Below, piece after piece: positions 21,918-64,000 of a stretch of 64,000 nt of DNA (positions are counted from its first letter, which is position 1; every line of letters starts with the position of its first letter). Origin of the DNA: Basidiobolus meristosporus CBS 931.73 (lineage: Eukaryota > Fungi > Basidiobolomycota); contig MCFE01000248.1 of the NCBI GenBank assembly GCA_002104905.1, forward strand, positions 1 to 64,000, in the 5' to 3' direction. The translations under genes were made by a program, and so were the position numbers. The notes beneath the pieces were generated by a model. It was not told the DNA's origin. It saw nothing but the letters and a program-made list of their open reading frames with translations, and made no database searches.

Positions 21918-22790
21918 AGACTTGTTCTTTTCAATATTGCTATTGAGTGTCTGTTTACTTTTGGTGCTGGATCAATAGACTCTATCACAATGCCAGTGGT
22001 AGGATCATTCTATTCAAAATTTTACTCAACCTGGCTTGTATTGCTCAGAATAGTGCTTTTCTTGCTTTATTCACACTTCAGAATGCTCCAGACACATTTC
22101 TCCCAGTGGATGTTTTGCCTGATCACACTGTGCAAAGGTTAATGTGTTGACTATGCTACCTATTCTGCAGTTTTCTTCTCTGTGTGACACTCTCTGAATT
22201 TGGCTGTAAACATGCTAAATCTCTTAGGATATCTAACTTATTGCTCTCCTCACTCTGAGATGATTAAATGTCTCTTTATATAGCTTCTGCTTCCTGCTGA
22301 GTACCCATTGATTGGCTTTCCTTAAGTTGTGATGCATCCTAATCACTGACAATCCTCTCCTAAATAAGCTAAGTCAGCTCTACATTTTGCACCTCTGCTG
22401 AATTGTTGATGACTTGATAGCCCAAATGATTTGTTGTGCCTACTTCCTGCAAATTGCCCACTAAATCAGATGCTGCAACCTGCAACATCAGACAGTGCTT
22501 GAAACTTCACCCAAAATGCCTAATATTTGCCAGAATAACAGTGTCTCTGCCCTCAAAAAGGTTGGCTAATCCTACTTGGAAGGTGTCCAAAACACTCTTG
22601 ATAGGGAACCCATTGCTGTATGCTGTAAGATATCCGATATAATTCAAGCTCCTGAACCTGGTATTCCAGGCTTGTTCTGGCATTCAAACCTTCCAAAAGG
22701 TGGTGCTTCATTGCAGGCTCTAATAATTTTGTTAGCATGGATGGTGGGATGAAACCCAGTAGGGCAATACTTCTTGTAATAGCAGAGAAG
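21918..22790 (-). pseudogene. Decayed PHIS transposon left end and transposase relic
   Basis: Starts AGACTTGTTC and is colinear with 39040-39960. Retains YSGKY and LDTF motifs, with stops and a deletion. Confidence 0.8.
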
Positions 22791-22879
22791 CTCTTGTTAC
22801 AAGTCTTGATATAACAGTATTAGTGGAATAAGGGGTTGAGCTACCATGGTATTTGTTAAAACTTGTACTGATACCTATT

Positions 22880-32609: not shown

Positions 32610-34750
32610 TGACTTGTTCCATTGTACCGTGCCAGGGCATGCAGCACAATCTGCAGTTGTAAAGAACAATTGGCTGCAATATTCAAGCTACCAGAAGGCA
32701 GGATAGTTCTTGGACAATTTTGCACTAGGTGGGACAATCTTGCACACTATGGCACAATCTGACACAATGAGGTTGCCACGGATGTTTGCGCCAACTTGTA
32801 ATGTTTGCATCATGTGCACAATTGGATACCACTATTATGGCAGGTAAAATCCGGTATTTGGATATGTTTCTTTAATGTGAATGGAAATAAATGTGTATCA
32901 CACTATAAACTACACTGATACTTACCATGTTGGTTACCATCATTCCAATTGGATGGTATCTCAATGGTTAATTGGTCCAAAAGTATCCTGAAGCTGGCAG
33001 CCCCCAATTGGCATATTGACTACTAAAAAAGCTACCTGATTTGCCATCAAATATCCCATTTTGCCCATTGAGCAAGTAAATTCCTGATTGTAGTGATTGG
33101 ACAAGGTGTCATAGCTAGCACGCAAGCAATTGGGTAGGTGCAAAACAGATTTAATAGCTGCACTGGTATTATAGATGATGTATATATATGCAGGGTTTTT
33201 ATTTATAGGGGTTCTGTCTCAAATATGAGACAACCTTGATATTACTTATATCAAAAATTTGATGATCACTGATTTGTGATGGCTTGATTCAGATTGCAAA
33301 AAAAAAGGGTTGTTGGGATCATTACAAATAATAGCAATCCAAAGCAATCGCATCATCTTCTCCTGGGTTTTTTTCTCACAGGGATTACTACTGAAGCATT
33401 TGGTAGTGACTCACTTTGCACACCTATACTACTTCCTGGCTGACTATAATCTTGGCTACTTGTGTATTTGTAGTCAGTATTTTGCCTCCTAGTTGATGAG
33501 TGCAATGCTGCAGCTTGGCCATGCTGAATTGCTCCGACTGAACAGACTGAACCGGCCTGGAGTGCCATGCGCTGACGCGTTCTTTTATTGGCAAGGGCTC
33601 TGGTGGTTAAGGCACTTCATGTTTGTCATCATCAGTCAGTTCACCAGAAGTAACTTGCTGATGGTCAGGCAAAATGGCACACACAGGCGCGCCTTGACAT
33701 GTTGAGATGGCCCTTGGCTGAGTTTGATGTGATGCTGCATGTTGATGCAACTTGGTCCGCTCCAATGGACTTGTGTCTAAATGGGCAGTTTGGCGAGTTC
33801 TGGTAGTTTTGCTCTGAAGCGCGCGCATTGACCCAACATGCGTTGACTTGACGTGGGGTGCTCTGGTAAAGGGTGTTGGCATAGTCTGGACTGACAAGTG
33901 CCGGCGTGCTGTGGTTGCAAGAGATGGTAAGGAATCTAGCAAGGCGTGCTGGCGCAATCTGGACAATGTTGCTTGCGGTCTGTATTCTTCCTCCTGAAGC
34001 TCACCATCTAATTCTTCAAGGTATTCACTTACCCTCTGTCTGATACTTTGAAGCTGTTGCCTGGATGAGTCCTGTGTATATTGCTCTGGGAAGCCACTTA
34101 GCTCTACTGATATATCACGTAGTAAATTAGTCATTTGAGGCAAAAACTCATTCAAAATCTCTTTGGTTCCCAAAGTTGAGGCACAAACAGACATGTCCGG
34201 CCTGTACTGTGCAAATTGCACACCAAATTGTTCCTGCGTGGCTTCTTCATCAAATTCCCTCACTCTCAGCTCATTCTTGATTTCAATACTTGTCTTGTTA
34301 TATATCTTCTTACATACATTGGCTGGCATCTTGATGTAGAACTCATGCCACAGCTTTCTACTCAAATTCTTCCATCTTTGTCAACTCTCTAAGGTATCTT
34401 GTTCTGCTAGATTAATCAGTAATGCCCAAATATCTGCATGAAGGCTCATCATAGACACTTGGGCCATACTAAAGTCATTTGGCAAGAACTCAAATGGATC
34501 CAACATTGACTTTTCCGGTCCTGACCGCGCTTGTGAGCTGGGGGATGGGTTTTGTCTGGGTTGTATTAAAGATGAGTAGAGGCTTGGTATGGGGACCATA
34601 GCAACAGATTTGGATACTTATACAGCAGTATATTGGCATCAACCTGGTCTTATATGAAATATATATGGAAACTAATGTGATTGTTGAATTCTCCATATTT
34701 TATGCTTGATGCATCTTGGATTGCATTGACACAGATCAGATCATATCAAT
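32610..34750 (-). mobile_element. PHIS transposon right-arm copy (terminus plus ORF2 pseudogene)
   Basis: Reverse complement of ~44675-46814. Terminus (T)GACTTGTTCC at 32610. ORF pieces 34490-34696, 33607-34365 and 33353-33568 match ORF2. Confidence 0.88.
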
Positions 34751-34771
34751 CAAAGATAGGCCAAAGTGTTA

Positions 34772-35657
34772 ATGGTGAGCCTTCATACAGATACTTGGGA
34801 ACTACTCATTAATCTAGCAGAACTAGATACCTCAGAGAGTCAACAAAGATGGAAGAATTTGAGTAGAAAGCAGTGACATGAGTTCTACATCAAGATGCCA
34901 GCAGATGTATGTAAGAAGGTATATAACAAGACAAGTATTGAAATCAAGAATGAGCTGAGAGTGAGGGAATTTGATGAGGAAGCCATACAGGAACAGTTTT
35001 GCATGCATTTGCACAGTATGGGCCAGATGCATCCTTTCATGGCTCAACTTTGGGAACCAAATAGATTTTGAATGAGTTTTTGCCTCAAATGACTAATGTA
35101 TTACATGATATATTACTAGAGCCAAGTGGCTTCCAAGAGCAATATACACAGGACTCATCCAGGCAACAGTTCCAAAGTATCAGAGAGAGGGTTAGTGAAT
35201 ACCTTGAAGAATCAGATGGTGAGCTTCAGGAGGAAGAATACAGACCGCAAGCAGAGGAAGAATACAGACTACAAGCAACAACTTCTAGATTGCACCAACA
35301 CTCCTTACTGGATTCCTTACCATCCCTTGCAACTTCAGTGTGCCAGCACACATCAGTCCAAACTACACCAACACCTTTACAAGAGTGCCCTGCATTGAGT
35401 CAACATGTGTGCTTCAGAGCAAAACCACCATAACTTGCCCAGCTGCTCATTTAGACACAAGTCCATTAGAGCAGGCCAAGTTGCATCTACAAGCAGCATC
35501 AAATTGAACTCAGCCAAGGGCCATGCCAGCGCATCAAGTTGCACCTGTGCATGTCATTACACCTGACCATCAGCAAGTTTCTTCTGGTAAACTGACTGAA
35601 GATGGCCCTCATGAAGAGCCTCCAGCACTAGAGCCTTTGGCAAGTAAAAGAACATGT
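34772..35657 (+). pseudogene. Third ORF2 fragment of the PHIS element, cut by a Gag-Pro LTR
   Basis: Colinear with 44970-45850. Carries an in-frame 24-bp duplication (EEEYRPQA/EEEYRLQA). Abuts the LTR at 35658. Confidence 0.85.
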
Positions 35658-37977
35658 TGTGGTGGTGTAGAGGTACTCCTGGGTGAAGCAACACAACTCA
35701 AGGTGTGGGAGGTGTCTAATGGGTGCTATAACCTCTATGTCTAAACTGCTGGTGTCTATGTCAATATGTCACTATGATAAAGCTCCTGCTTTTCTAGCTT
35801 CCCAGATGCTCCAAGTATCTTCAAAGGACTCTGTGTGTCTTGTGCACTTCCCTAAAAAGCTCCTTGATGGTAAGTCTGAGGTGTAAATGTTAAAGGTAGG
35901 TGCAGTGATCAACTGCTAATCAATAAGGGGAAAGTGTTACTGATAGAAGGGATGATTTATTGATGAGGGATTGCCTTCCCTTAAGTACTTTTTCTGATTG
36001 CCAAGTGATTACCAATGACAAGGTTCTAGAAGATTCCAGGCATCAGTGGATTCTTGATGACATCATTATGAGCTAAAAATATGCCAAGAATGTCCTGGAA
36101 GGTTCTAAAAGGCATAGCACATCCAACCAGTTAGGGATCAGTAGTCTGAAACCTGTGCAACATAGAGATACCATATATGGTATATATATGGTAAGGATGG
36201 TAACACAGACTTAGGTCATGTGTCACTGGTGCTGATGCCAGTACTTGCCAAATGTTGATACATAGATAGATCACAAAGCTGAATAACATCAGGGATAACT
36301 AATGTTAGTAGCTAATCAGGGTAAACCTCATATGAGGATAATACTAATAATATGGGCAAAAGAGAATTGGGATAATACTGATAAAATAAGATATGGATTA
36401 GGACATTATAATAGCTATATGAATAAAATTGTCTGTGGGAGGTATGTGGACCCTCCCACATCCACACCCCACTTGATCTAAGAAGTTCTCTGAAACTTTT
36501 TAGCTAACCACTGAAAGTATGGAGAACAAAGTGCTCTCTTAGTAATCCTCAATGAAGCCACCTGTCTTTTCTTGGGATAGAAATCTACATGATGTCATTG
36601 ATTGGATATTGCTTGGGTCCACACCACAGAAGGTAGCTGTTAGTCCTGGGCTCTCTGAGTATATAGTATACCATGCTGAACCATCTGGGTAGTTCACTGC
36701 AGTTGCTCTTGCTTTCACCTCCCATGGTCTTCTAAGAAGTAATTCCAAGTTAGCCTTTGCACAAATGAAGACTAGGGTCTCATGGAGTATTCTTTTAATG
36801 ATGAGAGGGAAGCTGTGGATAATTCCTAAAAGCTTTGATTTCCCTGAGTTGGCATCCTTCATGCTCTAATTGATATTGGTGTCTATGAATAATAGGTCCT
36901 TGTACGGTAGTTGGTTCCAAGCCTCCAAAGGCATCACACATATCTCAGATCCTCTGTCTATATGACATAGGATTTCTTGATTATGCACAGTCCCAGTATT
37001 TGTTGCAGTTGCCACTGAGTAGTAGTGTTTTTGGCTTTGACCCTGCTTACTGATATCTTGGTTTCCTTGAACTGTCTTTACCTGGTTGCCTTGGGTTGCT
37101 TCAATTGGATGCTTTCTTACTCTGATGTGCTGATCCAGAGTCTTTCCTACTGAGGGTGATACACTGAGTAGCTCTCCAACCTTATTTGGTATGTTGCTAC
37201 CTAGTGTATGACTGGTCAAAGCCTCTCTGGTACCATTTTGCTTGACTCTAAGCTGCATGTGGTAGTAGTTGGCCTTGGCAGACTCATGCAAGATTAATGG
37301 GGGTGATGCTTTCTGATCAATCACAACTACTTGCTCACACCTTTGTACTTTTGTTGATGGGCCTGGATAAGCCATCTTTTCAGGAAGATGTCTCTTTGAA
37401 GCATAACTTGAGGCTATATGATCTTGGGCCTCTCTGGGGTACTCATAGTCAAAGTTCAGATCTTCAGCTGGATCCAAGTAGTTAGGATCTTCTTCTTCAT
37501 GGAGGTACACCTTTCTTGTATGAGAGGTGACTTGCTTGTAGTGAACTCTTACTCCTCCTTGTCCAAATGCTGTGGATAATTTGTCACCATGCTTACTGAC
37601 TATATATCCCTGAGGACTGTACAGGACATCACCTGTGGATAGTAATGACTGAAGCACTTGGCAATTTCACTTGAAATGGTTGGCAGAGTCACACCATATA
37701 CATGTATATTTAATCTCTTTCTCTACTGACTTCTGTCCATATGCTTGGCTGGCCAGTAGCACAGAAAGTTTCTCTAGTTGCTGTGTCAGCTCCTGAATTT
37801 GAGTATTCTGCTTTCTGGATTACGTAAGTCTTGGCTATCTTTGTTTTGTGCTGGGCTCAAAAGAAGCTTTCCTATTGGTGAGGTTTCTTCAGGGGCAAGT
37901 AGAATCTGCGTAGCTAACTGAAATGCAAGCAGTGAACTCATAGCTCCCACAGTAGGATCACTTTCAATCCTTGTAAC
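35658..37977 (-). mobile_element. Older, 5'-truncated copy of the Gag-protease-only LTR element
   Basis: 3' LTR at 35658-36460 with adjacent PPT. ORF pieces 36866-37657 and 36539-36862 match the 618-aa ORF and end at the same position (GGFIEDY*). Confidence 0.9.
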
Positions 37978-38888
37978 TAACTAAGTTATTCCCTATTGCT
38001 TCATCTATGAGATGATGTCTAATATCTATGTGTTTAGTTCTGGCATGAAAAGTTAGATATCTACCTAATTGTATACATCCTTGATTATCTCAAAATAAAG
38101 TTATAGGTGTTTTTTGACATAAGCCTTAATCTATAAAAAGCTTTCTTAACCACATTGCTTCTTTTGTAGCTTCACAGGCTGCCATATACTCTGCCTCTGT
38201 GATGGAAAGTCCCCTGGTTGGTTGCTTTCTTGAATTCCATCAAACTGCTCCTTTACAGTAAAGAAATAGACTTGTTCCATCATTCCAGCTGATCATAGTG
38301 CCTAATAGTGCCATAGCATGCCAGATGGTGCTTGATCATGCCACAGAGTGACAGTTGGTGCCATACAATGCCAATTTGGGATCAAAATTGACATGCATAT
38401 GACCCTAAAATATCAAATTTATAACAAAATATACAGCACTTTCTGGCACTATGATCAATGGCACAATGGAAAAAGCTAAATATGTATCCTGTGGTGGGTC
38501 TTCTGTCTTTTAAATATTGTCCCCAATCAGCATCAGAGTATCCCACAAGACCCTGCCCTGAATTCTTATAAGTGTATCATAAGCAGATATTGGCAGTTGC
38601 TTTAGGTATCTAAAAATCTGCTTAACTGCTGCAATATGATCAGATCCATAGTTCTGATTTTGCTGGCTGACAACTCCCACAGAATATAAAATATCTGGAC
38701 ATGTTCCATGCATAAAATACATCCGACTGACAACCATAGATTGATAAGGAAAGGGCTTTTAGATGGCACCAAGCTCTCCTGATTTGGTTGAGTTGTGACC
38801 AAGTAAAGGTTTGTCTCCATTGGTGTAGCTGCTGGTTTACAGTCTTCCATTTGGTACTTCTTTAATATGTATTGAATATACTTGCATT
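37978..38888 (-). mobile_element. Copia family B RT/RNase H 3' fragment
   Basis: KYIQYILKKYQMEDCKPAATPMETN...HID. Begins exactly at AATGC next to an LTR start. Confidence 0.85.
38268..38478. mobile_element. Short MITE with PHIS-family termini
   Basis: AGACTTGTTCCAT...ATGGAAAAAGCTA with internal TAGTGCC/GGCACTA motifs and AAT on both flanks. Removing it restores the Copia frame TTGYIFLYCKG. Confidence 0.75.
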
Positions 38889-39222
38889 TGTTGTAAAAGT
38901 AAGTAATTCCACCTAAATATTCACCAAACTTAGTCACTTAGATCATAACCCTCAAATCCTAGAGAATACTGACCAAATTTCCTGTTGGCATCCTGGAGAA
39001 TACTGACCAAATTCCTGGTTGGAATTTACTTAGAATAATAAACTTGTTCTGTTGAATAGTGCCATATAGTGCCAGCCTGTTTATGGTGCCGGATCAATCT
39101 GGCACTCTACAGCACTATCTGGCACTATAATTTCTACCATGATGCCAGTGGTATGATACAGTTACTGGTAATTCTACTCAATCTTATTTATGTTGCTCAG
39201 AATAATGCTTTACTTGCTTTAT

Positions 39223-40107
39223 TTACTCTTCATAATGCTCCAGACACATTTCTCTCAGTGGATGTCTTCTTGTATGAGCATACTGTGCATTAATAAGTAT
39301 CTTAACTATTTTACCTATTCTGCTGTCTTCAACAGTATATGACTTTCCTCTGTATTTACCTGCCAATATGCTGAATCTCTTCAGATATCCAAATGTGTGC
39401 TCTACCCTCACTCTGAAATGATTAAATATCTCATTGTAGAGCTTCTGCTTCCTGCTAAGCACACCATTTCTTAGCTTCCTATAAGCTGTAATACATCCTA
39501 ATCTCTGACAATCCTCTCCTATATAGGCTAAGTCTGCCATACATTTCTCCCCTCTACTGAATTCAGGATGATTCTCTACCCAGAGTGCTTTGTCATGCCT
39601 ACTTCCAGCAAATGGCCCACTAAACCAGATGATGTTACCTTCACTGTCAGACAGTGCTTGAAACTTCACACAGTGTGCCTTGTACTTGTCAGAATAAAAG
39701 TGCCTCTGCCCTCTAGAAGGTCTGTTAATCCTGACTGGGAAGGTATCCAAAATACTCCTTATCTGGAACATGTTGCTGAACACTCTGGGATATGGAACTA
39801 TATTGGAGCTTCTGAACCTAGTATTCCAAGCTTGCTCTAAGTCACTCATACCCTCTGCAAGGTGGTTCTCCATTGCTGTCAGATGGGAATGAATGCTTCT
39901 TGGACTTTTGTTGCCATGGATGGTGGGATGAAACCTTGTAGGGCAATAGTTCTTGTAATGGCAGAGAAGCTTAACAAGGGATCCCCTTGAGTAGATTGGG
40001 GTTGATGGTCCACAGTACTTGGAATAGATCTCCTCTAGTGTGTCAAAAGGAAATCCAGTGGTAGTGATGGGATTGATGAGAAAAGACCATTCAGATGAGT
40101 AAGTCAT
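39223..40107 (-). CDS. DDE transposase (DDE_Tnp_4 / IS5-like PHIS type), 294 aa, open frame
   Basis: Motifs ILDTFPVRINRP, YSDKYKAHCVKFQ, SGPFAGSRHD, MADLAYIG and RVRVEHTFGYLKRF supply the D-D-E triad. YSDK differs from YSGK in the sister relic, so activity is uncertain. Confidence 0.85.
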   Translation of the reverse strand: MTYSSEWSFLINPITTTGFPFDTLEEIYSKYCGPSTPIYSRGSLVKLLCHYKNYCPTRFHPTIHGNKSPRSIHSHLTAMENHLAEGMSDLEQAWNTRFRSSNIVPYPRVFSNMFQIRSILDTFPVRINRPSRGQRHFYSDKYKAHCVKFQALSDSEGNIIWFSGPFAGSRHDKALWVENHPEFSRGEKCMADLAYIGEDCQRLGCITAYRKLRNGVLSRKQKLYNEIFNHFRVRVEHTFGYLKRFSILAGKYRGKSYTVEDSRIGKIVKILINAQYAHTRRHPLREMCLEHYEE

Positions 40108-40139
40108 ATTAAAATTGGTGGATGATTGTATGGAGGCGG

Positions 40140-40943
40140 TGTGGTAGGGTAAACATACCTCCCACAGACAAGTTTATTCATATAGTCATTATGATATACT
40201 TATCCATATTTTATCTTATCAGCATTATCCCATTCTTCTTTTGCCCATATTATCAGTATTATCCCCATATGATGTTTACCCTGATTAGTTATTAGCATTA
40301 GTTATCCCAGATGTTATTCAGCTTTGTGATCAGTAGATGTATCTATATAAGGCAAGTACCCGCGTCAGTACCCGTGACACATGACCTAGGTCTGTGTTAC
40401 CATCCCTACCAATTCAATACCATATATGGTATTTCTATGTTGCACAGGTTTCAGACTACTGATTCCTGATTGGTTGAGAGTGCTGTGCCTTTTAGAACCT
40501 TCCAGGACATTCTTGGCATATTTTTAGCTCATAGTGATGTCATCAAGAATTCCACTGATACCTAGCATCTTCTAGAACCTTGTCATTAGTAATCACTTGG
40601 CAATCAGGAAAAGTATTTAAGGGAAAGCAATCCCTCATCAATAAATCATCCCTTCTATCAGTAACACTTCTTCCTTATTGATTAGCAGTTGATCACTGCA
40701 CCTGCCTTCAACAGTACATCTCAGACCTGCCATCAAGGAGCTTTTCAGGGTAGTGCACAAGACACACAGAGGCCTTTGGAGACACTTGGAGCACCTAGGA
40801 AGCTAGAGAAGCAGGAGCTTTTACCATAGTAACATATTGACAAAGACACCAGCAGTTTAGACACAGAGGTTATTGCACCCATCAGACACCTCACACACCT
40901 TGAGTTGTGTAGCTTCTCCCAGGAGTACCTCTACACCACCACA
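40140..40943 (+). repeat. 5' LTR
   Basis: TGTGGTAGG...ACCACCACA with TATATAA at 40344-40350. Confidence 0.95.
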
Positions 40944-40947
40944 TATT

Positions 40948-40964
40948 TGGCACCCAACGTGGGG
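40948..40964 (+). promoter_or_regulatory. Primer-binding site, tRNA-Lys type
   Basis: TGGCACCCAACGTGGGG against the known tRNA-Lys1,2 PBS TGGCGCCCAACGTGGGG: one mismatch, at a CpG. Confidence 0.8.
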
Positions 40965-41017
40965 GGTTTGACTGAACTGCCCCTAGAAGACTTAAGAAAG
41001 AACAAATTATCAAGACC

Positions 41018-42874
41018 ATGGATCTACCTTTACCAGGAATGCAAGGAACTCCTTTCTTTGATGGAACCAAAGTTAAAGCTTTCATCAAGAGGTGGGAGCT
41101 TTTCTGCAGAGCCCACAAAATACCTGAGGCCATTATGGCTGAAGAGATGCCCCCCTACAGCACTGATGAGATCATGCTCTCATTATATGAAAGACATGAT
41201 CTGCTGACAAATTGGACCCTCTTGAAGAGCTACTTGATTGATGAATATGGAGAGAGACAAGTTGACTACACACTTCAAGACTTGGAGAACTTTGCTTATA
41301 GCAAGTTTAAGCTGCTACCATTGAAAGAATACTTGAGTGGCCTTGAGCAAATTGGAGAGTCACTGAAAGCCCAAGGCATTATCACTGATCTGACTTTATC
41401 TGCCTATCTGCTCAGAGCACTACCAGAAGGCCTGGTGAGAAGGATTGAAAACAATCCTACTGTGAAAGCTATGAGTTCACTGCCTGCATTTCAGTTAGCT
41501 AAGCAGATTCTACTTGCCCCTGAAGAAACCTCACCAATCAGAAAGCTTCTTTCAAGCCCAGAACAAAACCAAGATAGCCAAGACATACTTAATCCCAGCA
41601 ATCAAAGCACTCAAATTCAGGAGCTGACACAGCAACTAGAGAAACTCACTTTGCTACTTGCCAGCAAAGCATATGGTCAGAAGCCAGTAGAGAAAGAAGT
41701 CAAATATACATGCATGTGGTGTGACTCTGCCAACCATTCCAAGAGAAATTGCCAAGAGCTTCAGTCATTACTATCCACAGGTGATGTTCTATATAGTCCT
41801 CAGGGATACATAGTCAGTAAGCATGGTGACAAATTATCCACAGCATTTGGACAAGGAGGAATGAGAGTTCACTACAAGCAAGTCACCTCTCAAACAAGAA
41901 AGGTTCACCTCCATGAAGAAGAAGATCCTGACTACTTTGATCCAGCTGAAGTTCTGAACTTTGACTATGAGGACCCCAGAGAGGCCCAAGATCATATAGC
42001 TTCAATTTATGCTTCAAAGAGACACCATCCTGAAAAAATGGCTAATCCAGGCCCAGCAACAAAAGTACCAAGATGTGAGCCAGAAGTTGTGATTGAGAAG
42101 AAAGCATCACCCCCATTAATTTTACAAGAGTCTGCCAAGGCCAACAACTACCACATGCAGCCTAGAGTCAAGCAAAATGGTACCCCAGAGGCTCTGACAA
42201 GTCATATACTAGGAAGCAACATATCAATCAAGGTTGGAGAGCTACTCAATGTATCACCATCTGTAAGAAAGACTCTGGATGAGCATATCAGAATAAGAAA
42301 GCATCCAATTGAAGCAACTCAAGGCAACCAGGTCAGGACAGTTCAAGGAAGCAAAGATATTAGTAAGCTGCATCAAAGCCAGAAACACTACTACTCAGTG
42401 GCAACTGCAACAACTACAGGAACTGTGCATAATCAAGAAATCCTATGTCATATAGACAGTGGATCTGAGATATGTGTGATGCCTTTGGAGGCTTGGAAAC
42501 AACTACCATGCAAAGACCTATTGCCCATAGACACCAATATCAATTGGAGCATGAAGGATGCCAACTCAGGGCAATCAAAGCTTTTAGGAATTATTCACAG
42601 CTTCCCTCTCATCATTGAAGGAATACCCCATGAGATCCCAGTATTCATTTGTGCAAAGGCTAACTTTGAATTACTTCTTGGAAGACCATGGGAAGTAAAA
42701 GCAAGAGCAACTGCAGTGAACTACCCAGATGGTTCAGCATGGTATACTATATACTCAGAGAGCCCAGGACTAACAGCAACCTTCTGTGGTGTGGACTCAA
42801 ACAATATCCGATCAATGACATCATGTAGATTTCTATCTCAAGAAAGGACAGGTGGCTTCATTGAGGAAGACTGA
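41018..42874 (+). CDS. Gag-aspartic protease polyprotein, 618 aa, intact
   Basis: N-terminal PFFDG..V..FI..WE capsid-like motif, zinc knuckle CMWCDSANHSKRNC, protease HIDSGSEICVM...LLLGRPW. The stop is followed ~65 bp later by the PPT. Confidence 0.9.
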   Translation: MDLPLPGMQGTPFFDGTKVKAFIKRWELFCRAHKIPEAIMAEEMPPYSTDEIMLSLYERHDLLTNWTLLKSYLIDEYGERQVDYTLQDLENFAYSKFKLLPLKEYLSGLEQIGESLKAQGIITDLTLSAYLLRALPEGLVRRIENNPTVKAMSSLPAFQLAKQILLAPEETSPIRKLLSSPEQNQDSQDILNPSNQSTQIQELTQQLEKLTLLLASKAYGQKPVEKEVKYTCMWCDSANHSKRNCQELQSLLSTGDVLYSPQGYIVSKHGDKLSTAFGQGGMRVHYKQVTSQTRKVHLHEEEDPDYFDPAEVLNFDYEDPREAQDHIASIYASKRHHPEKMANPGPATKVPRCEPEVVIEKKASPPLILQESAKANNYHMQPRVKQNGTPEALTSHILGSNISIKVGELLNVSPSVRKTLDEHIRIRKHPIEATQGNQVRTVQGSKDISKLHQSQKHYYSVATATTTGTVHNQEILCHIDSGSEICVMPLEAWKQLPCKDLLPIDTNINWSMKDANSGQSKLLGIIHSFPLIIEGIPHEIPVFICAKANFELLLGRPWEVKARATAVNYPDGSAWYTIYSESPGLTATFCGVDSNNIRSMTSCRFLSQERTGGFIEED

Positions 42875-42952
42875 GAGAGCACTTTGTTCTCCAAACTTAC
42901 AGTGGTTAGCTAAAAAGTTCCCTGAAACTTTTTAGCTCAAGTGGGGGGTGGA

Positions 42953-43756
42953 TGTGGTAGGGTAAACATACCTCCCACAGACAAGTTTATTCATATAGTC
43001 ATTATGATATACTTATCCATATTTTATCTTATCAGTATTATCCCATTCTTCTTTTGCCCATATTATCAGTATTATCCCCATATGATGTTTACCCTGATTA
43101 GTTATTAGCATTAGTTATCCCAGATGTTATTCAGCTTTGTGATCAGTAGATGTATCTATATAAGGCAAGTACCCGCGTCAGTACCCGTGACACATGACCT
43201 AGGTCTGTGTTACCATCCCTACCAATTCAATACCATATATGGTATTTCTATGTTGCACAGGTTTCAGACTACTGATTCCTGATTGGTTGAGAGTGCTGTG
43301 CCTTTTAGAACCTTCCAGGACATTCTTGGCATATTTTTAGCTCATAGTGATGTCATCAAGAATTCCACTGATACCTAGCATCTTCTAGAACCTTGTCATT
43401 AGTAATCACTTGGCAATCAGGAAAAGTATTTAAGGGAAAGCAATCCCTCATCAATAAATCATCCCTTCTATCAGTAACACTTCTTCCTTATTGATTAGCA
43501 GTTGATCACTGCACCTGCCTTCAACAGTACATCTCAGACCTGCCATCAAGGAGCTTTTCAGGGTAGTGCACAAGACACACAGAGGCCTTTGGAGACACTT
43601 GGAGCACCTAGGAAGCTAGAGAAGCAGGAGCTTTTACCATAGTAACATATTGACAAAGACACCAGCAGTTTAGACACAGAGGTTATTGCACCCATCAGAC
43701 ACCTCACACACCTTGAGTTGTGTAGCTTCTCTCAGGAGTACCTCTACACCACCACA
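42953..43756 (+). repeat. 3' LTR
   Basis: Near-identical to the 5' LTR; preceded by PPT aagtggggggtgga. Confidence 0.95.
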
Positions 43757-43877
43757 GCGGTTTGAATCAATTCAGCGCATTCTGAGTTATTTATCAGATT
43801 TTTAATGTATTATGGTTAAATATCCATCAATTGCCATGTGTCCCATCACTATGTCACAAAAATCATTGGCAAACAAT

Positions 43878-44611
43878 AGACTTGTTCTGTTGGATAGTGC
43901 CACATTGAGCCATGAGTGCCAAATGATGCCATAGTGTGCCAAAGAGGCCAAGTGAGCCTATACTTGGCCACAGAGTGTGAAACATATATCTGCATCTTCA
44001 TGCAAAGTAGCCCCTGTGTTTCACCTATGATGCTGGAGAAAATCCATTTTTTGATTCTTTTTTTGTGCATCAATATTGTGCAGGATGTGTAAGAGCACCA
44101 AAGGATTGAAGATATACATCTGGTACTCTATACCCATGGCACTCTGAATCTAGCTCCAGTGGCTTGTACCATGTCACAAAAATGCATGGCACTATCTTGG
44201 TCCACTGGTACTATCTGGCACTATATTTAAATATTAGCCCTAGAGTAAGATGAATACAAAGCACTTATAGTGTTAGAGAGTACCAGTGGACCAAGATAGT
44301 GCCATGCATTTTTGTGACATAATACAAGGCACTGGAGCTAGATTCAGAGTGCAATGGGTATTAAGTACCAGATGTATATCTTCAATCCTTTTGTGCACTT
44401 ACACATCCTTTACAACATTGACCTAAAAGAAAAGGTCAAAAAATGGATTCTCTCCACCACAATGAGTGAAACACAGGGGCTGCTCTGCATGGAGATGCAG
44501 AGCTGTGCTGCACACTTTGTGGCCAAGTGTAGGCTCACTTGGCCTCCCTGGCACACTATGGCATCATTTGGCACTCATGGCTCAATGTGGACTATCCAAC
44601 GGAACAAGTAT
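43878..44611. mobile_element. Foldback MITE with ~330-bp inverted arms and PHIS-family termini
   Basis: 43878-~44210 is the reverse complement of ~44280-44611, with a ~70-bp spacer. Termini AGACTTGTTCTGTTGG / CCAACGGAACAAGTAT; TSD AAT at 43875-77 and 44612-14. Confidence 0.88.
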
Positions 44612-44727
44612 AATGCCTTGGTACTTTTATTGATGCTTTAATCATAGGTCTATAATCAAATAGGAAATCTGCAATTGATGTGATCTGATCTGTGTCAAAG
44701 CAATCCAAGATGCATCATGCATAAAAT

Positions 44728-46071
44728 ATGGAAAATTCAACAATCACATTAGTTTTCATATATATTTCATATAAGACCAGGTTGATTCCAATATACTGCT
44801 GTATAAGTATCCAAATCTGTTGCTATGGACCCATACCAAGCCTCAACTCATCTTTAGTACAACCCAGACAAAACCCATCCCCCAGCTCACAAGCGCGGTC
44901 CAAACCGGAAAAGTCAATGTTGGATCCATTTGAGTTCTTGCCAAATGATTTTAGTATGGCCCAAGTGTCTATGATGAGCCTTCATACAGATATTTGGGCA
45001 CTACTGATTAATCTAATAGTACTAGATACCTCAGAGAGTTGACAAAGATGGAAGAATTTGAGTAGAAAGCTGTGGCATGAGTTCTACCTCAAGATGCCAG
45101 CCAATGCATGTAGGAAGATATATAACAAGACAAGTATTGATATCAAGAATGAGCTGAGAGTGAGGGGATTTGACAAAGAAGCTGTGCGGGAACAATTTTG
45201 CACGCAATTTGCACAGTACATGCCAGACGTGTCCGTTTGTGCCTCAACTTTGGGAACCAAAGAGATTTTGAATGAGTTTTTGCCTCAAATGACTAATGTA
45301 CTACGTGATATATTAGTAGAGCTAAGTGGCTTCCAAGAGCAATATACACAGGACTCATCCAGGCAACAGCTCCAAAGTATCAGACAGAGGGTAAGTGAAT
45401 ACCTTGAGGTATCAGATAGTGAGCTTCAGGAGGAAGAATACAGACCGCAAGCAACATTGTCCAGATTGTGTCAGCATGCCTCACTGGATTCCCTACCATC
45501 TCTTGCAACCACAGCGTGCTGGCCCACATCAGTCCAGACCATGCCAACACCCTTTACCAGAACACCCCGCATCAAGTTAATGTGCATTGAGTCAACGCAC
45601 ACACTTCAGAGCAAAACTACAAGAACTTGCCAAACTGCTCATTTAGACACAAGTCCATTGGAGCGGACCAAGTTGCATCAACATGCAGCATCACATTGAA
45701 CTCAGCCAAGGGCCATCTGAACGTGTCAAGGTGTGCCTGCACGTGCCATTTTGCCTGACCATCAGCAAGTTACTTCTGGTGAACTGACTGATGATGACCA
45801 ACATGAAGTGCCTCAACCACCGGAGCCCTTAGCAAGTAAAGGAACGCATCAGCACGTGGCACTGCAGGCTGGTTTAGTTGGTTCAGTCAGAGCAATTCAG
45901 CACGGCCAAGCTGCAGCATTGCACTCATCAACTAGGAGGCAAAATACTGACTACAAATACACAAGTAGCCAAGATGATAGTCAGCCAGAAAGTAGTATAG
46001 GTGTGCAAAGTGAGTCACTACCAAATGCTTCAGTAGTAGTCCCTGTGAGAAAAAAACCCAGGAGAAGATGA
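44728..46071 (+). pseudogene. PHIS accessory ORF2 (~384-447 aa reconstructed): F-box-like motif, helical core, S/T/Q-rich tail, basic RKKPRRR end
   Basis: Three track ORFs (44728, 45058, 45733) share one frame and are separated only by TGA at 45040 and 45697. Sister copies have CAA at these sites, implying ancestral CGA. Confidence 0.7.
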
Positions 46072-47032
46072 TACAATCGCTTTGAATTGCTCACATTTGT
46101 AATGATCCCAACAACCCATTTTTTTTGCAATCCAAATCAAGCCATTGCAAATCAGTGATCATCAAATTTTTGATGTAAGTAATATCAAGGTTGTCTCACA
46201 TTTGAGACAGAACCCCTATAAATAAACACCCTGCATATATATACTTCATCTGTAATACCAGTGCAGCTATTAGATCTGTTTTGCACCTCCCCAATTGCTT
46301 GCATGCTAGCTATGACACCTTGTCCAATCACTACAATCAGGGATTTACTTGCTCAATGGGCAAAATGGGATATTTGATGGCAAATCAGGTAGCTTTTTTA
46401 GTAGTCAATAAGCCAATTGGGCGCTGCCAGCTTCAGGATACTTTTGGACCAATTAACCACTGAGATACTGTCCAATTAGAGTGAGGGTAACCAAAATGGT
46501 AAGTATCAGTGTAGTTTGTAGTGTGATATGTTTTTATTTCCATTTACATTAAAGAAACATATCCAAATACCAGATTTTACCTGCCATAATAGCGGTATCT
46601 GATTGCGCACGTGATGCAAACATTACAAGTTGGCGCAAATATCCGTGCCAACCTCATCATGTCAGATTGTGCCATAGTGTGCAAGATTGTCCCACATGGT
46701 GCAAAATTGTCCAAGAACAATCCTGCTTTCTGGTAGTTATAATATTGCGCCCAATTGTTCTTTACAACCGCGGATTGCGCCGCATGCCCTGGTACGGTAC
46801 AATGGAACAAGTCTATTTACCCAGAACATAAAATTAGATAAGTTGTCCAAACAGCCCCAAACTTTGAACACATGTTACTGGGAGCCTCCTTAGCCTATTC
46901 TATGAGTCTGTGATGCCAAGACCATGTCAAAGTATAAATGCTACTTTTACATTTGATAAATCATTAAGTGAAAACCACACAATCTACTTGTGCCCTCAAA
47001 TCACATCTAACATCTCCAAGACTCTTACAACA

Positions 47033-51764: not shown

Positions 51765-54700
51765 TATAGTAAGAGTCTTGGAGATATTGGAAGTGATTTG
51801 GGAGAACAAATAGATTATGTGGTTTTCACTTAATGTTTTATTGAATGTAAAAGATATATTTATACTTTTACATGTTCTTGGCATACCAAACATGTAGAAT
51901 AGGCTAAGGAAGATCTCAAGAACATGTATGCACAGTTTGGGGCTGTTTGGACAACTTTGAGAATTTTCATGTTCTGGGTACCTGGTATTTTGGTGAAAAT
52001 ATTCTAAGTAAATCCCAACAAGGAATTTGGTCAGTATTCTCTAGGATTTGAAGGTAATGATCTAAGTGACTAAGCTAGGTGAGTGTTTAGTTGGAATTAC
52101 AAATTTTACAACACTCCCACTCAGCTAAATGTTTTTACTGACTACTCCTAATTTGAGCTAAGATATTCAAATATGTCTTTAGCTAATGGTTTTGTAAATA
52201 TGGCTGCAATCATTTCATCAGTAGGACAGTAAACTAAGCTAACTAAGTTATTCTCTATAGCTTCACATATGAAATGATGTCTAATATCTATGTGCTTGGC
52301 TCTAGCATGAAAAGTTAGATATCTACCTAATTATATACATCCTTGATTATCTCAAAATAAAGTTATAGGTGTTTTTTGGCATATACCTTAATCTGTATAA
52401 AGCTTTTGTAACCACATTGCTTCTTTTGTAGCTTCACAGGCTGCCATATACTCTGCCTCTGTGATTGAAAGTGCCACGGTTGGTTACTTTCTTGAACTCC
52501 ATGATATTGCTCCTTTTCCATAAAGCAAGGTGTATCCTATGGTAGATCTTCTGTCTTCCAAGTTTTGTCCCCAAACAGCATCAGAGTATTCCACAAGATC
52601 CTTCTCTGAATTCTTATAAGTGTATCTTAAGCAGATATTGGCAGTCCCTTTTAGGTATCTAAAAATCTGCTTAACTGCTGTAATATGATCAGATCCATAG
52701 TTCTGATTTTGCTGGCTGACAACTCCCACTGAATATGAGATATCTGGACATGCTCCAAGCATAATATACATCCAACTGCTGATCATAGATTGATAAGGAA
52801 AGTCAGGGCTTTCAGATGGCACCAAGCTCCCTTGATTTTGTTGAGTTGTGACAAAGAAAAGGTTTGTCTCCATTGGGGTGGCTGCCAGTTTACAGTTTTC
52901 CATTTGGTACTTCTTTAGTATATCTTGAATATAGTTGGATTGGCTCAAGGTAATAGTCTTAGTACTTCTGTCTATGGAAATCTTAATCTCTAAGTAGTAA
53001 CTGAGTTCTCCTAGTTTGGACATCTTGAACTCCTTAGATAGGCTGGATTTAGTCTCTTCCAATGTTTCTAGGTTATTGGCGGTTATAATAAGATCATTCA
53101 CATATAGAGTTAATAGGACTGGATTTGCTCTATCTGGCTTATATTATACACTATAGTCAGCATTACTCCTTCTGAAACTCAAAGATTCCAAATAAGAATC
53201 CATCTTGCAATTCCAGGCTCTTGGTGATTGTTTGAGACCATATAGTGACTTCTAAAACTTGCAAACCAAATGAGGGTTATCTTGATCAGCAAACCCATCA
53301 GGCTGGTCCATATACATGTCCTCATCAAGTTCTCCATTCAAAAATGCAGTTTTTACATCCATTTGATGAATAAAAAACTTATATTTGGCTGCAATAGCCA
53401 ATATTAATATGATGGAATTAAACTCAGCTACTGGTGCAAAGGTCTCAGTATAGTCAAGTCCTTTTGTTTGAGAATATCCTTTGGCCACAAGTCTTGCTTT
53501 GTATCTTTCAATTGTATCATCTGCTTGGTATTTTGTCTTGAAAACCCATCTACATCCAATTGACTTTTGGTTGATTGGTAACTTGACTAAGTCCCAACTT
53601 TGATTTTCCATCAGGGCCTGATATTCCTCAGTCATTGCAGATCTCCAAAACCTTGTCTGAGGGCTATTTAGGGCCTCTTTTATAGTCTGGGGCTCATCAA
53701 TATGGGCTGAATAGGCATAGGCTAAGTTTGTACCCTCATTTATATAGTAATTTGGGCTATTTCTTGCCTGATTTGATCTCCAGGCATTTTATATTGGAAT
53801 GATCACTTCTGTGATATTCCTAGCCACTGCTGCAGGCTGAACCATGGTTGTAGAGTCCTGTGGAGTGAAAAAGAACTGATTGTCTTGCTCTTATTCAATC
53901 CTGACAGTTGGCGGACTTGAGATCAGATTTCTGTCATCATCTGATGCCATTTTTTGTGAAATTTTCAAATTTTCATCACACAACACATTCCTAGACTTGA
54001 TCAGCTTTGTTGCTTTGGTATTTTAGAGTCTGTATGCTTCACTCTGATTTCAGTAACCCATAAATTTGCACTTTACACTTTTTGGTTCCAATTTTGACTG
54101 ATTTCCAGGTGGTTTCTTGACATATGCTCCACACCCATATATTTTTAGATGTCCTGCACTTGGTCAGTACCCATACTATGCTTCAAATGGAGTAGAACCA
54201 CAAGGTATTCTGTAATAACTCTTATTTCTAAGGTACACAGGAGTGGCAACTGATTCCACCCAAAAATCATAAGATAATTTTTGATCATGGATCATTGATC
54301 TTGCCATATCAATCATTGATCTGTTTGCATGTTCTGCTACTCCATTTTGCTGTAGGGAGTATGGTACAGTAGTCTTTTGCTTTATCCCATGAATTTTGCA
54401 GGTGTGGATGAAGAGTTTTGAGGTATATTCTCCACCCTTGTCAGAGTGTATTTTCTTGATTTTTTCACCAGTTTCTCTCTCCACCATGGCTTTGAGCTCC
54501 CTGAGCTTAGACAGAGCTTCTTCCTTTTTCTCCATGAAGTAGACCCACCTTTACCTTGTATAATCATCAATAAAAGTGATTAAATATCTCATCCCACCAA
54601 AGGGAAAATTTTGCATAGGTCCACACAGATCTGAGTTAGTTAGATCTAGTTTTTTCTTAGTTTTGATCAACCCAGAGCTCTTGAATGGCTTTCTGGCCTG

Positions 54701-57700
54701 TTTCTCATACATGCAGGCTTCACAGTGCTCCAAATTAGCTGAGGGATCAATTTTTACTCCGCAAATTAGCTGATCTTTGATTGTTTTGTGCAAATAATCA
54801 TAATTGATGTGCCCAAAACTCCTGTGCCAGAGCATTGGTGTTTCCTCATTTAAGCTACTTATATTGGCTTCCAGATATGATGAAATATAAGTCAGCTTGT
54901 ATAGACTCTGATTTCTGATACCCAAAGCAATATGGGCTCTTTTTGATCAGTGATCCTGCATCCAGAGTTGTCAAAGCTGAAGCTGAGTCCCTCTGCTGTG
55001 GCCTTACTCACAGATAGTAGGTTCTTGGCTATTTCAGGTACATAGAGTACTTCTTTAAAGGTTAATATATGGCTTCCTTCACTGCTTCTAAGGTTTAATT
55101 GGATAGTTCCTTCTCCCACAGCATCAAGTGTTCTATTGCCACCCATGAAAACCTTCTTAATTGGAATTTCTTGATATTGGGTAAGAAGTTCCTTTTAGTG
55201 TGTAGAGTGATGCAATGCTCCAGAGTCCATGTACCACATCTGAGAATCCTTGTTTGTGGTCATATTTAGTGCAGATATGAATAGTCTATCTTCAGTTGTT
55301 GCAGCATATCCATATTCAGACTTCTTTTGCTGATTATCTTTCTTTTCAAGACACCGGTCTGATGTGTGTCCTTTCCTTTTGCAGTAGTTACAAAACAGGT
55401 TGCTGTTGCCTTTGTAGGGTCTTGGGCTCCTCCTTTGTTGCCTATCATTACTTATTAAAGCATTTTCTTTATCCTTCTTGTTGGTGCTTGATCTTCTTAG
55501 TTCATCATCCAGGAGCCTTCCTAATACATAATTTAAGGTCAAATCTTCAGTTCTGGACTCTAGAGCTGATACTGTTGTAAAAATTTGTATTTCCACCTAA
55601 ATACTCACCTAACTTAGTCACTTAGATCATTACCTTCATATCCTAGAGAATACTGACCAAATTCCTTGTTGGGATTTACTTAGAATATTTACCCAGAACA
55701 TGAAAATTAGATAAGTTGTCAAAACAGCCCCAAACAGCCCCAAACTTTGCACACATGCTCTTGGAACCTTCCTTAAGCTATACTATGTGTTTGTAATGCC
55801 AAGACCAGGTAAAAGCATAAATACTACTTTTACATTCAATAAATCATTAAGTGAAAACCACATAATCTACTTGTTCTCTCAATCACTTTCAATATTTCCA
55901 AGACTCTTACAACAGGTTATGAGCCCCAAGCTGTCACTCTCCGCAATGTCTACCACTGCTATTACTGGAATCTTTCCCTCTGCTGAAAAGTTGGATGGAT
56001 CTAAATACCAAGTGTGGAAGGTGAAGATGAAGATGCTGCTGCAAGAAAGAGTCTGTTAGGATATTTTCATGGGAGAAGAAGCTTTAGAGTACTAGAAGAA
56101 AGAACAAAGTGCCTTTAACTGCATTTGCCTTGATGTTAAGGACAAATTGCTGATTCAGTGCTCAAGAGTAAAAACAGCAAAGAATGCCTGGAAGGCATTA
56201 GAAGACACTTACCAGTCATGTTCAGCTGCTACAACAATCTATCCAAGACAAAAATTCTTTACTACAAAGATGCTGTCAGGAGAAGAAATAAAAAATCTAA
56301 TTAACAGAATTACCCTGCTGGTAGATGCGATGGAATCTGTTGGCGTACCAACTACTGATGAGGATGTGAAAGTTGCCATCCTGAATAGCCTGACAGACAA
56401 GTTTCAGGGCCATGTATCAGCCCTGGAGTCCAGAACTGAAGATTTGACCTTAAACTATGTATATGGAAGGCTCCTGGATGAAGAATTAAGAAAATCAAGT
56501 GCCAATAAGAAGGAAGAAGAAAATGCTTTAATAAGCAATGATAACCAACAAAGGAGGTACCCAAGACCCTATAAAGGCAACAGCAACCTGTTTTGCAACT
56601 ACAGCAAAAGGAAAGGACACACATCAGACTGGTGTCTTGAAAAGAAATATAATCAGCAAAAGAAGCCTGAATATGGAAATGCTGCAACAACTTAAGATAG
56701 ACTATTCATATTTGCACTAAATATGACCACAAAAAAGGATTCTCAGATGTGGAATATTGGCTCTGGAACATCTCAACACTCTACACACCAAAAAGAACTT
56801 TTTACCCAATATCAAGAAATTCCAATTAAGAAGGTTTTCATGGGTGACAATATAACACTTGATGCAGTGGAAGAAGGAACTATCCAAGTAAACCTAAGAA
56901 GCAGTGAAGGAAGCCATACACTGACCTTTAAAGAAGTACTCTATGTACCAGAAATAGCCAAGAACCTACTATCTGTAAGCAAGGCCACTGCAGAAGGACT
57001 CAGTTTCAGCTTTGACAATTCTGGATGCAAGATCACTGATCAAAATGGTGCCCATATTGCTTTGGGTATCAGAGATCAGAATTTATACAAGTTGACTTAT
57101 ATTCCATCATATTTGGAAGCCAATATAAGTAGCTTAAATGAAGAAATACCAATGCTCTGGCACAGGAGATTTGGGTACATCAATTTTGATTATTTGCGCA
57201 AAATGATCAAAGATCAGCTAATTTTGGGAGTAAAAATTGATCCCCCAGCTAATTTGGAGCACTGTGAAGCCTGCATATATGGGAAACAAGCCAGACAACC
57301 ATTCAAGAGCTCTAGGTTAATCAAAACTAAGAAAAAATTAGATCTAACTTGCTCAGATCTGTGTGGACCTATGCAAAATTTGTCCTTAGGCGGGATGAAG
57401 TATTTAATCACTTTTATTGATGATTATACAAGATACACATGGGTCTACTTCATGGAGAGAGAAGAAAAAGCTCTGTCTAAGTTCAGGGAGCTCAAAGCCA
57501 TGATGGAGAGAGAAACTGGTGAAAAAATCAAGAAAATATGCTCTGACAATGGTGGAGAATATACCTCAAAACTCTTCATCCACACCTGCAAAATTCATGG
57601 GATAAAGCACAAGACTACTATACCATACTCCCCACAGCAAAATGGAGTAGCAGAATGTGCTAACAGATCAATAATAATATGGCAAGATCTATGATCCATG

Positions 57701-62903: not shown

Positions 62904-64000
62904 TTACACAGGGCTCTTCTGGAGGTGTTGGTAGAGTGCCGGGTTGCTGTGCCTGAGATGGCCCAGGAGGGAGCTCTTCGCCTCCGGCTTTTTCGCCTGG
63001 TGGAGACGATTTAACAAGGCCTGTAGGACCTTGATATTGGGCTGAATCCCGCACTGGTCCATTTCGTGGGTGATCACAGCGACCGCGTCGTTGTGTCTCC
63101 CTATGGAGCACAATAGGAAAATGTAGGTGTTGTAGAGGTCGACGGTCACTCGACCCCTTAGCTGCCGCTTCAAAGAATCCCAATACCGACTCAAGGCGAG
63201 TTGGTCGCTCTGATCTCGCGTGGAATCGTAGTATGAATGTAACATCACCGAGGCCGAAGGTGTGATATCCTCAGCAGGATCACTACTCGCCAGGATCAGC
63301 TCCCATAGCCTGGTGACTTCATCATGTTGACCTTGGCAGGCGTGACATTTCATGAGGGTGGTATACACATGATTGTTGGGGACCAATCCTGCGGACCGCA
63401 TCTCCTCGTACATCTTGATCACCGTCTCGTTATCACCTTGCTTGAGATAGGCGTTCATAAGAATGTTGTAGGTCTGGCTCGTCGGCGGTACCTCCACCTT
63501 CATCTGTTCCAGAAGCTCCCGAGCCTTGTGGAAATTAAGATCTCTACCGTAGCCATCGATGAGAGTATTGAAGAGGGTGACGTTGGGCGGGATGCCCCTC
63601 CGTCTCATCTCTTCGAACAAGCTGGTCGCCTTGTCCATGTCACCATTTCTGCTGTAGGCGAGAATCAGCATCCCGTAGGTGTAGATATCGGGCTGAAGAC
63701 CATCGAGCAGAAGCTCCGAATACTTGGCCATCACATAATCAAACCGGTTCATCCGAGTAAACGCTAGAATCAGAGCATTGAACGTGGTGATGTCTAGGGG
63801 CACCTTTAGGGCCTTCATCTCGTCGTAGATCTTCAAGATCTGCTTGATGTCCTTCGAGGTTTTCGCCAATATGTTGAACAGATAGTTGTAGGTGGCGGTG
63901 TTGGGCTGAAGCTTGCACCGGAGCATCTGTCGATAGATTTCCAACGCCATCACTGGGGACGGGTTGCGTAGGCAGGCGCTGAGAACGCCATTAACACTGC
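62904..64000 (-). CDS. P-class pentatricopeptide repeat (PPR) protein, 5' end outside the window; probably organellar RNA-binding
   Basis: At least 5 tandem ~35-aa repeats (PDIYTYGMLILAYSRNGDMDKATSLFEEMRRRGI, PNVTLFNTLIDGY, PTSQTYNILMNAY...). The frame stays open from 63953 to the window edge, and CpG content is normal. Confidence 0.9.
   Translation of the reverse strand, partial: SVNGVLSACLRNPSPVMALEIYRQMLRCKLQPNTATYNYLFNILAKTSKDIKQILKIYDEMKALKVPLDITTFNALILAFTRMNRFDYVMAKYSELLLDGLQPDIYTYGMLILAYSRNGDMDKATSLFEEMRRRGIPPNVTLFNTLIDGYGRDLNFHKARELLEQMKVEVPPTSQTYNILMNAYLKQGDNETVIKMYEEMRSAGLVPNNHVYTTLMKCHACQGQHDEVTRLWELILASSDPAEDITPSASVMLHSYYDSTRDQSDQLALSRYWDSLKRQLRGRVTVDLYNTYIFLLCSIGRHNDAVAVITHEMDQCGIQPNIKVLQALLNRLHQAKKPEAKSSLLGHLRHSNPALYQHLQKSPV

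Follow-up and report, generated by a model that had tools for sequence, protein, structure and literature searches.

A single DNA transposon occupies positions 39040-46814 of the 64,000-nucleotide stretch of Basidiobolus meristosporus CBS 931.73 analysed here (contig MCFE01000248.1, positions 1 to 64,000; hereafter the window), as established by BLAST of the region against the window and by direct reading. It carries an intact transposase gene and a second, decayed open reading frame (ORF2). We propose that it is probably a full-length but dead copy of a Pangu element, a group of the PHIS superfamily that corresponds to Harbinger2 in Repbase (PMC12730594, Kojima 2025), and that ORF2 encodes a fast-evolving accessory protein and not the F-box adaptor put forward in a preliminary description of this DNA.

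Ends, target site and nested insertions

The ends, the target site and the insertions within the element are as follows:
39040..39054, forward strand: left terminal inverted repeat (TIR), AAACTTGTTCTGTTG, matching the right end at 12 of 15 positions
46800..46814, reverse strand: right TIR, the reverse complement of AGACTTGTTCCATTG
39037..39039, no strand: left target-site duplication, AAT (ATT at the empty sites)
46815..46817, no strand: right target-site duplication, ATT
55679..55694, forward strand: paralogous empty site, uninterrupted CTTAGAAT-ATT-TACCC, with ATT at 55687-55689
59978-59993: second paralogous empty site, uninterrupted CTTAGAAT-ATT-TACCC, with ATT at 59986-59988
40140..43756, forward strand: nested long terminal repeat (LTR) retroelement, not the transposon's own, with 804-bp LTRs that are 99.75% identical
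43878..44611, no strand: nested foldback miniature inverted-repeat transposable element (MITE) of 734 bp, with the same termini as the main element

The TIRs start with AGACTTGTTC and their similarity reaches about 15 bp, which is the short, AG-starting type found in Pangu elements. The outermost 10 bp on the left (39040-39049) read AAACTTGTTC, differing from AGACTTGTTC at one position, and the outermost 10 bp on the right (46805-46814) are the reverse complement of AGACTTGTTC. Termini of this family take the form AGACTTGTTCC, and a pattern search returned seven of them in the window where about two matches would be expected. The flanks of the element (39000-39037 and 46814-46898) belong to a repeat with other copies in the window, and the sequence that runs uninterrupted through both empty sites is split by 39040-46814 in the filled site. 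The ends, the two empty sites, the 3-bp flanks and the DDE_Tnp_4 transposase bear out the earlier recognition of matching termini, an empty site and a two-gene, PHIS/Pangu-like element.

The 3-bp AWT duplication of the preliminary description holds for the nested MITE, which is bordered by a perfect AAT/AAT repeat (43875-43877 and 44612-44614); at the main element the flanks are AAT and ATT, so the duplication is not exact there and one substitution is needed. Since both empty sites carry ATT, a 3-bp ATT duplication followed by one substitution in the left copy fits as the simplest account of these flanks. The element thus shows the ANT duplication of Pangu, a reading that draws on only two two-ended insertions (the main element and the nested MITE) together with the empty sites. 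No register of the canonical TWA duplication (TAA/TTA) matches both ends of either of these two insertions.

The register of the duplication also bears on a rival classification, in which the element would belong to PHISTA, a PHIS lineage with TA duplications, its ends here being GACTTGTTC preceded by a 2-bp TA duplication. TA does stand directly before GACTTGTTC at all but one of the seven termini in the window, among them the two ends of the main element and those of the MITE, an observation that counts against a Pangu assignment; the end at 21919 is preceded by GTT and not by ANT; and the accessory proteins of PHISTA also lack Myb/SANT (PMC12730594). However, the TA reading needs three extra bases in the filled site relative to both empty sites, where the ATT reading needs one substitution, and for this reason we rank the TA register below ATT. 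Counting back from GACTTGTTC, the fourth base is A at six of the seven termini, and the base that follows it is A or T at all seven, as expected if an A-W-T duplication were followed by an A-starting TIR. Moreover, PHISTA has been described from Pucciniales only (PMC12730594). We therefore consider membership of PHISTA unlikely and retain Pangu as the preferred assignment.

Both insertions nested within the element are separable from it. The LTR retroelement carries one gag-protease ORF of 618 aa and is bordered by a CG-centred 4-bp GCGG duplication (40136-40139 and 43757-43760); it lies between the two genes, 32 bp upstream of the start codon of the transposase. With the two inserts taken out, each together with one copy of its duplication, the transposon is 3,417 bp long.

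Gene content, decay and assignment to Pangu

The two genes, the copies of the ORF2 region and the non-coding parts of the element are located as follows:
39223..40107, reverse strand: transposase ORF, 294 aa, intact, DDE_Tnp_4
44917..46071, forward strand: ORF2, about 384 codons, with in-frame TGA at 45040, 45697 and 45718
44674-46813: copy 1 of the ORF2 region (c1), part of the main element
32611..34750, reverse strand: copy 2 (c2), comprising ORF2, right arm and TIR of a second element, 92% identical to c1
34759..35653, forward strand: copy 3 (c3), an older ORF2 fragment, 82% identical
39055..39130, no strand: left subterminal repeats, namely ATAGTGCC-like motifs (five to six copies, both orientations)
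46072..46799, no strand: right non-coding arm, with subterminal ATTGCGCC, TTTGCGCC and ATTGTGCC motifs and 13 CpG kept

The transposase scores 82.6 bits against DDE_Tnp_4 (cut-off 24.8) and 39.1 bits against DDE_Tnp_1 in Pfam, and 51 bits against the IS5 model of NCBIfam; neither database reports a domain other than the DDE core. D121, D192 and E236 are invariant relative to the only two relatives retrieved (P0001 and P0002), so the catalytic triad is intact, and the protein has the DDE_Tnp_4/IS5-type core and D-D-E triad of the PHIS superfamily. A relative on a 1,250-bp Logan contig (SRR949943; L001:188-1072) is likewise 294 aa long, is 61% identical and has one CpG in its ORF. Because this relative is of equal length, 294 aa suggests itself as the full length of the protein; the contig probably represents a sister family, either in the same organism or in a related one.

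ORF2 faces away from the transposase and consists of one frame that needs no splicing. The spacing of about 260 bp given earlier for the un-nested genes is confirmed at 262 bp if ORF2 starts at 44728, the ATG of the longest ORF in c1, and becomes 451 bp if it starts at 44917, the first in-frame ATG common to c1 and c2; upstream of this shared ATG the two copies are separated by a 1-bp indel at 44829. The presence of ORF2 in three copies, also noted before, was recovered by BLAST against the window. The ORF2 frame contains three internal stops, compared with 13-33 stops in the other five frames, and the copies differ at two of these stops. Codon 42 is TGA in c1 and c2 and CAA in c3, both of which are CpG-decay products of CGA, and codon 261 is TGA in c1 and c3 and CAA in c2. 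The CAA of c3 opposite the TGA of c1 and c2 implies that the ancestral codon 42 would have been CGA, and at least two of the three stops derive from CGA decay. Given the few stops in frame and the CpG-type TGA/CAA differences between copies, ORF2 is a real gene that has been disabled by the CpG-directed mutation dominating this genome.

The two genes have fared differently under this mutation. The 885-bp transposase ORF contains no CpG, and all 25 of its arginine codons are AGA or AGG; ORF2 retains 16 CpG and the right arm 13, with observed/expected ratios of 0.27 and 0.45, respectively. Lack of CpG in its coding sequence explains why the transposase is still open, and CGA-to-TGA changes explain why ORF2 is broken. 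CpG-context transitions make up 74 of the 167 differences between c1 and c2, and these copies have diverged by 8.2% in ORF2 and 8.1% in the non-coding right arm. The ratio of non-synonymous to synonymous change (dN/dS, Nei-Gojobori) among c1, c2 and c3, proposed earlier as a check on ORF2, proved uninformative, being 0.52-0.59 in frame and 0.53-0.83 in two wrong frames. We discard it as evidence because the out-of-frame controls give the same result, the ratio reflecting a transition- and CpG-biased mutation spectrum. The ORF2 copies have diverged neutrally, as dead copies do, and dN/dS says nothing on the function of ORF2; in this CpG-decaying genome, a naive dN/dS below 1 is no evidence of selection. 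The right non-coding arm also contains a 60-codon ORF that is open in both c1 and c2 (46281-46463 and 32961-33143); it is probably there by chance, since the divergence of the right arm equals that of ORF2.

We propose a history in which a 3,417-bp transposon would have inserted at ATT within another repeat and would later have been hit by the LTR retroelement, between its two genes, and by the 734-bp foldback MITE of its own family. The transposase would have stayed open for want of CpG, while the CpG-containing ORF2 would have been knocked out by CGA-to-TGA changes.

The defining description of Pangu rests on ANT duplications confirmed on paralogous empty sites and on TIRs of 11-40 bp that usually start with AG or GG (PMC4482050, Han et al. 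2015). Autonomous Pangu elements average 3,487 bp and have two ORFs, with 216-537 aa for ORF1 and 170-592 aa for ORF2, and no known motif in the second (PMC4482050). Among the 34 Pangu families in Table S3 of that study, the ORF2 domain is blank in 32 and given as Myb_DNA-bind_4 in two, and six families also have no listed ORF2 length; the fungal families, some with AWT duplications, come from Melampsora, Puccinia, Tremella, Tuber and Talaromyces (PMC4482050). The element described here has the same combination of a transposase without any other domain and a motif-free second ORF (compared with Table S3, PMC4482050), and the marks of another PHIS group, ISL2EU (a 2-bp AT duplication, a transposase bearing THAP/HTH and a YqaJ exonuclease as partner), do not occur in it, there being no Pfam match to YqaJ, THAP or HTH_Tnp_4. 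A further mark of the Pangu group is a transposase clade next to bacterial IS5. The element agrees with Pangu in every feature compared, namely the duplication, the TIRs and the make-up of the two ORFs.

The ORF2 protein and its possible roles

The ORF2 protein is composed of the following regions:
residues 1-41: acidic and hydrophobic
residues 43-100: strongly basic, pI 9.9
residues 101-165: acidic, helical
residues 166-384: S/T/P/Q-rich, with a C-terminal RKKPRRR

ORF2 was searched as separate, unmodified, stop-free pieces, and the N-terminal ~55 residues, which straddle the codon-42 stop, entered the searches in separate parts. On none of the pieces did Pfam (E<=10) or NCBIfam return an F-box, Myb/SANT, MADF, YqaJ or other credible domain, in agreement with the earlier statement that ORF2 lacks Myb/SANT and YqaJ; for Myb/SANT, trihelix and MADF, the absence of a Pfam match at E<=10 on any piece applies to a candidate region that is split by the codon-42 stop. 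No ORF2 homologue emerged from a word-indexed search of 5.8 billion proteins, an exhaustive phmmer search of 1.84 billion representative proteins gave zero matches, and two look-ups in the ESM Atlas yielded no usable match. Single ORF2 pieces returned chance-level matches only among PDB sequences (a fucosidase and an integrin), and a bridging profile (A2) composed of pieces of c1, c2 and c3 in unmodified form returned none. An AlphaFold2 model of the 256-aa core of c2 was poor, with a mean pLDDT of 52.5; it predicts helices to about residue 161 of the piece, followed by disorder, which in the same low-confidence model places the helical part to about residue 205 in ORF2 numbering. Foldseek with this model found nothing below E = 0.9.

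The preliminary description saw in ORF2 an F-box-type protein, and in the transposon the carrier of an adaptor that would recruit host Skp1/SCF and act as an anti-silencing or host-manipulation factor. The stretch SLHxDIWxLLINL...RQRWKNL is indeed loosely F-box-like, and LPNDF lies further upstream. However, at E<=10 the F-box and F-box-like models of Pfam gave no match on 44917-45039, 34384-34506 or 34760-34873, although HMMER filters may hide very weak F-box matches; the last of these is a 38-aa piece of c3 that spans the motif without a stop, having CAA where c1 and c2 have TGA. A missing Pfam match does not settle the matter on its own, since degenerate F-box-like motifs in plant-virus silencing suppressors evade profile searches (PMC6593998, PMC6784205). 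Further points against an F-box are that PDB sequences gave no match to either a single sequence or the bridging profile, and that no LRR, WD40, Kelch, FBA or other substrate-recognition domain follows in the remaining ~340 residues of ORF2, as judged by Pfam. Measured against the F-box consensus of about 45 residues (LP...I...L...S/C..W), the spacing from L to W is about four residues short and the conserved P and S/C are absent, and neither possible register puts P, S/C and W correctly. The resemblance of the same stretch, W27-x17-W45-K-N-L-S-R-K, to an F-box is presumably no closer than its resemblance to helices 2-3 of MADF/trihelix domains; RWKNL and its basic residues, like the aromatic spacing, would be compatible with the third helix of Myb/MADF/trihelix domains. 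An orphan ORF2 is, in addition, already the norm in Pangu elements (PMC4482050). An F-box-type adaptor is thus highly improbable. We give equally little credence to the narrower idea that the acidic, leucine-rich N-terminus (LPNDF...DIWALLINL...RWKNL) is a minimal, profile-invisible, F-box-like Skp1-binding motif of the kind seen in some plant-virus suppressors. If it were true, Pangu elements in this fungus would encode an SCF adaptor through which a host factor for silencing or methylation is degraded.

Another conceivable reading is that ORF2 is dispensable for transposition, being a passenger ORF, captured or arisen de novo, that has no function or one unrelated to the transposase. It would account for the lack of any ORF2 homologue or domain in the protein, ESM Atlas and PDB searches, and for three copies without a signal of purifying selection beyond the out-of-frame controls. 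Yet the frame of about 384 codons has suffered only CpG-type knock-outs and is kept also in the older, 82% identical copy, and the copies are dead, so their neutral divergence is silent on selection in active ones. Furthermore, a layout with two ORFs is the rule in PHIS groups, Pangu among them, and those Harbinger systems that have been tested need both proteins (PMC4482050, PMC9392472). A passenger origin is accordingly quite unlikely, and an accessory protein with a part in transposition remains the reading that we favour.

In Harbinger elements the partner protein binds the TIRs and imports the transposase into the nucleus, and it diverges much faster than the transposase (PMC9392472). By analogy, ORF2 would most likely do the job of this Myb-like partner, combining subterminal binding with nuclear import of the transposase. 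In this scenario, the short subterminal motifs at both ends would be bound by the N-terminal aromatic/basic helical region and the transposase would be contacted by the helical acidic middle, with the C-terminal RKKPRRR directing the complex to the nucleus. The subterminal motifs occur at about 3 per 100 bp at both ends and at 0.54 per 100 bp in the window, an enrichment of about six-fold, and the left ATAGTGCC and right ATTGCGCC, TTTGCGCC and ATTGTGCC forms differ by CpG decay. Such repeats would look like putative binding sites for an element-encoded DNA-binding protein.

Several points weigh against this overall interpretation. The triplets flanking the main element are unequal (AAT on the left, ATT on the right) and do not form an exact direct repeat. 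The predicted structure of the ORF2 core is of poor confidence, as noted above, and the N-terminal ~55 residues are split by the codon-42 stop. Finally, the searches detected no DNA-binding domain in ORF2 either, for which reason its role as a Harbinger-type partner is an analogy.

Genomic surroundings and comparison with known elements

The window is eukaryotic, with nothing that points to human DNA, and is almost entirely composed of nested repeats, Copia- and Gypsy-type fragments among them, with a GC content of about 40% and a CpG observed/expected ratio of 0.10. An Rfam scan of the window gave no match. The sole GC-rich stretch of the window (GC 0.51) holds an ORF for a PPR-repeat protein (62904-63950, reverse strand), the one apparent host gene. 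Large PIF/Harbinger expansions have been reported in Basidiobolus genomes (PMC5751038, Muszewska et al. 2017), and further relatives of the element lie in the window. The second copy of the ORF2 region is the right half of a second element that is truncated on the transposase side, and the third is broken off at 35653, where another copy of the LTR element (35658-37972; 5'-truncated, 90% identical) cuts into it. These two copies, one on the reverse and one on the forward strand, adjoin head-to-head within 9 bp (34750-34759), so that a younger copy is joined to an older one in inverted orientation. Two other remnants are present:
21919..22792, forward strand: decayed left end with a partial transposase, from a related element (76% identical in DNA)
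38267-38482: MITE of 216 bp with the same GACTTGTTCC terminus and a degenerate right end

The 216-bp MITE was considered as an additional empty-site test and rejected, as its paralogous sites (52529-52530 and 59454-59455) carry GG, which fits neither TA nor ANT.

The architecture that the preliminary description did not recognise, two ORFs with a motif-free second one, has already been published for Pangu (PMC4482050), and what is new here is one more family. Our work adds this Pangu/Harbinger2 family from a fungal lineage unsampled by the defining paper, which has little import beyond annotation. The orphan second ORF, exotic at first reading, is the normal state of the Pangu group. The structural nature of Pangu ORF2 proteins is a question for the whole group, for which intact copies are better material than the present one.

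Set beside known systems, ORF2 shares with F-box proteins and viral F-box-like suppressors an N-terminal helical stretch rich in leucine, with a basic RW motif after it, and it differs from F-box proteins in having no profile match, the wrong spacing and no substrate-binding domain. PHISTA is likewise a fungal PHIS lineage, with accessory proteins that lack Myb/SANT, and TA precedes most termini of the present element; unlike PHISTA, which has been described only in rust fungi, the element has empty sites that favour a 3-bp duplication and has no TET/JBP gene. Canonical PIF/Harbinger elements, as outlined in the summary of Sinzelle et al. 2008 given in PMC9392472, resemble it in their two separate genes, DDE_Tnp_4 transposase and repeated subterminal motifs, and their partner protein resembles ORF2 in its N-terminal aromatic/basic helical region and basic, nuclear-localisation-like tail, whereas the duplication here is not TWA and ORF2 has no match to a Myb/SANT/MADF profile. 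The family is not in the table of Han et al., and Basidiobolus is not among the 15 species listed there. It is nevertheless like Pangu in its A-W-T duplication and short, AG-starting TIRs, in its length of about 3.4 kb (3,417 bp compared with an average of 3,487 bp), in pairing a transposase that has DDE_Tnp_4 alone with a motif-free second ORF of a few hundred residues, and in its associated MITEs.

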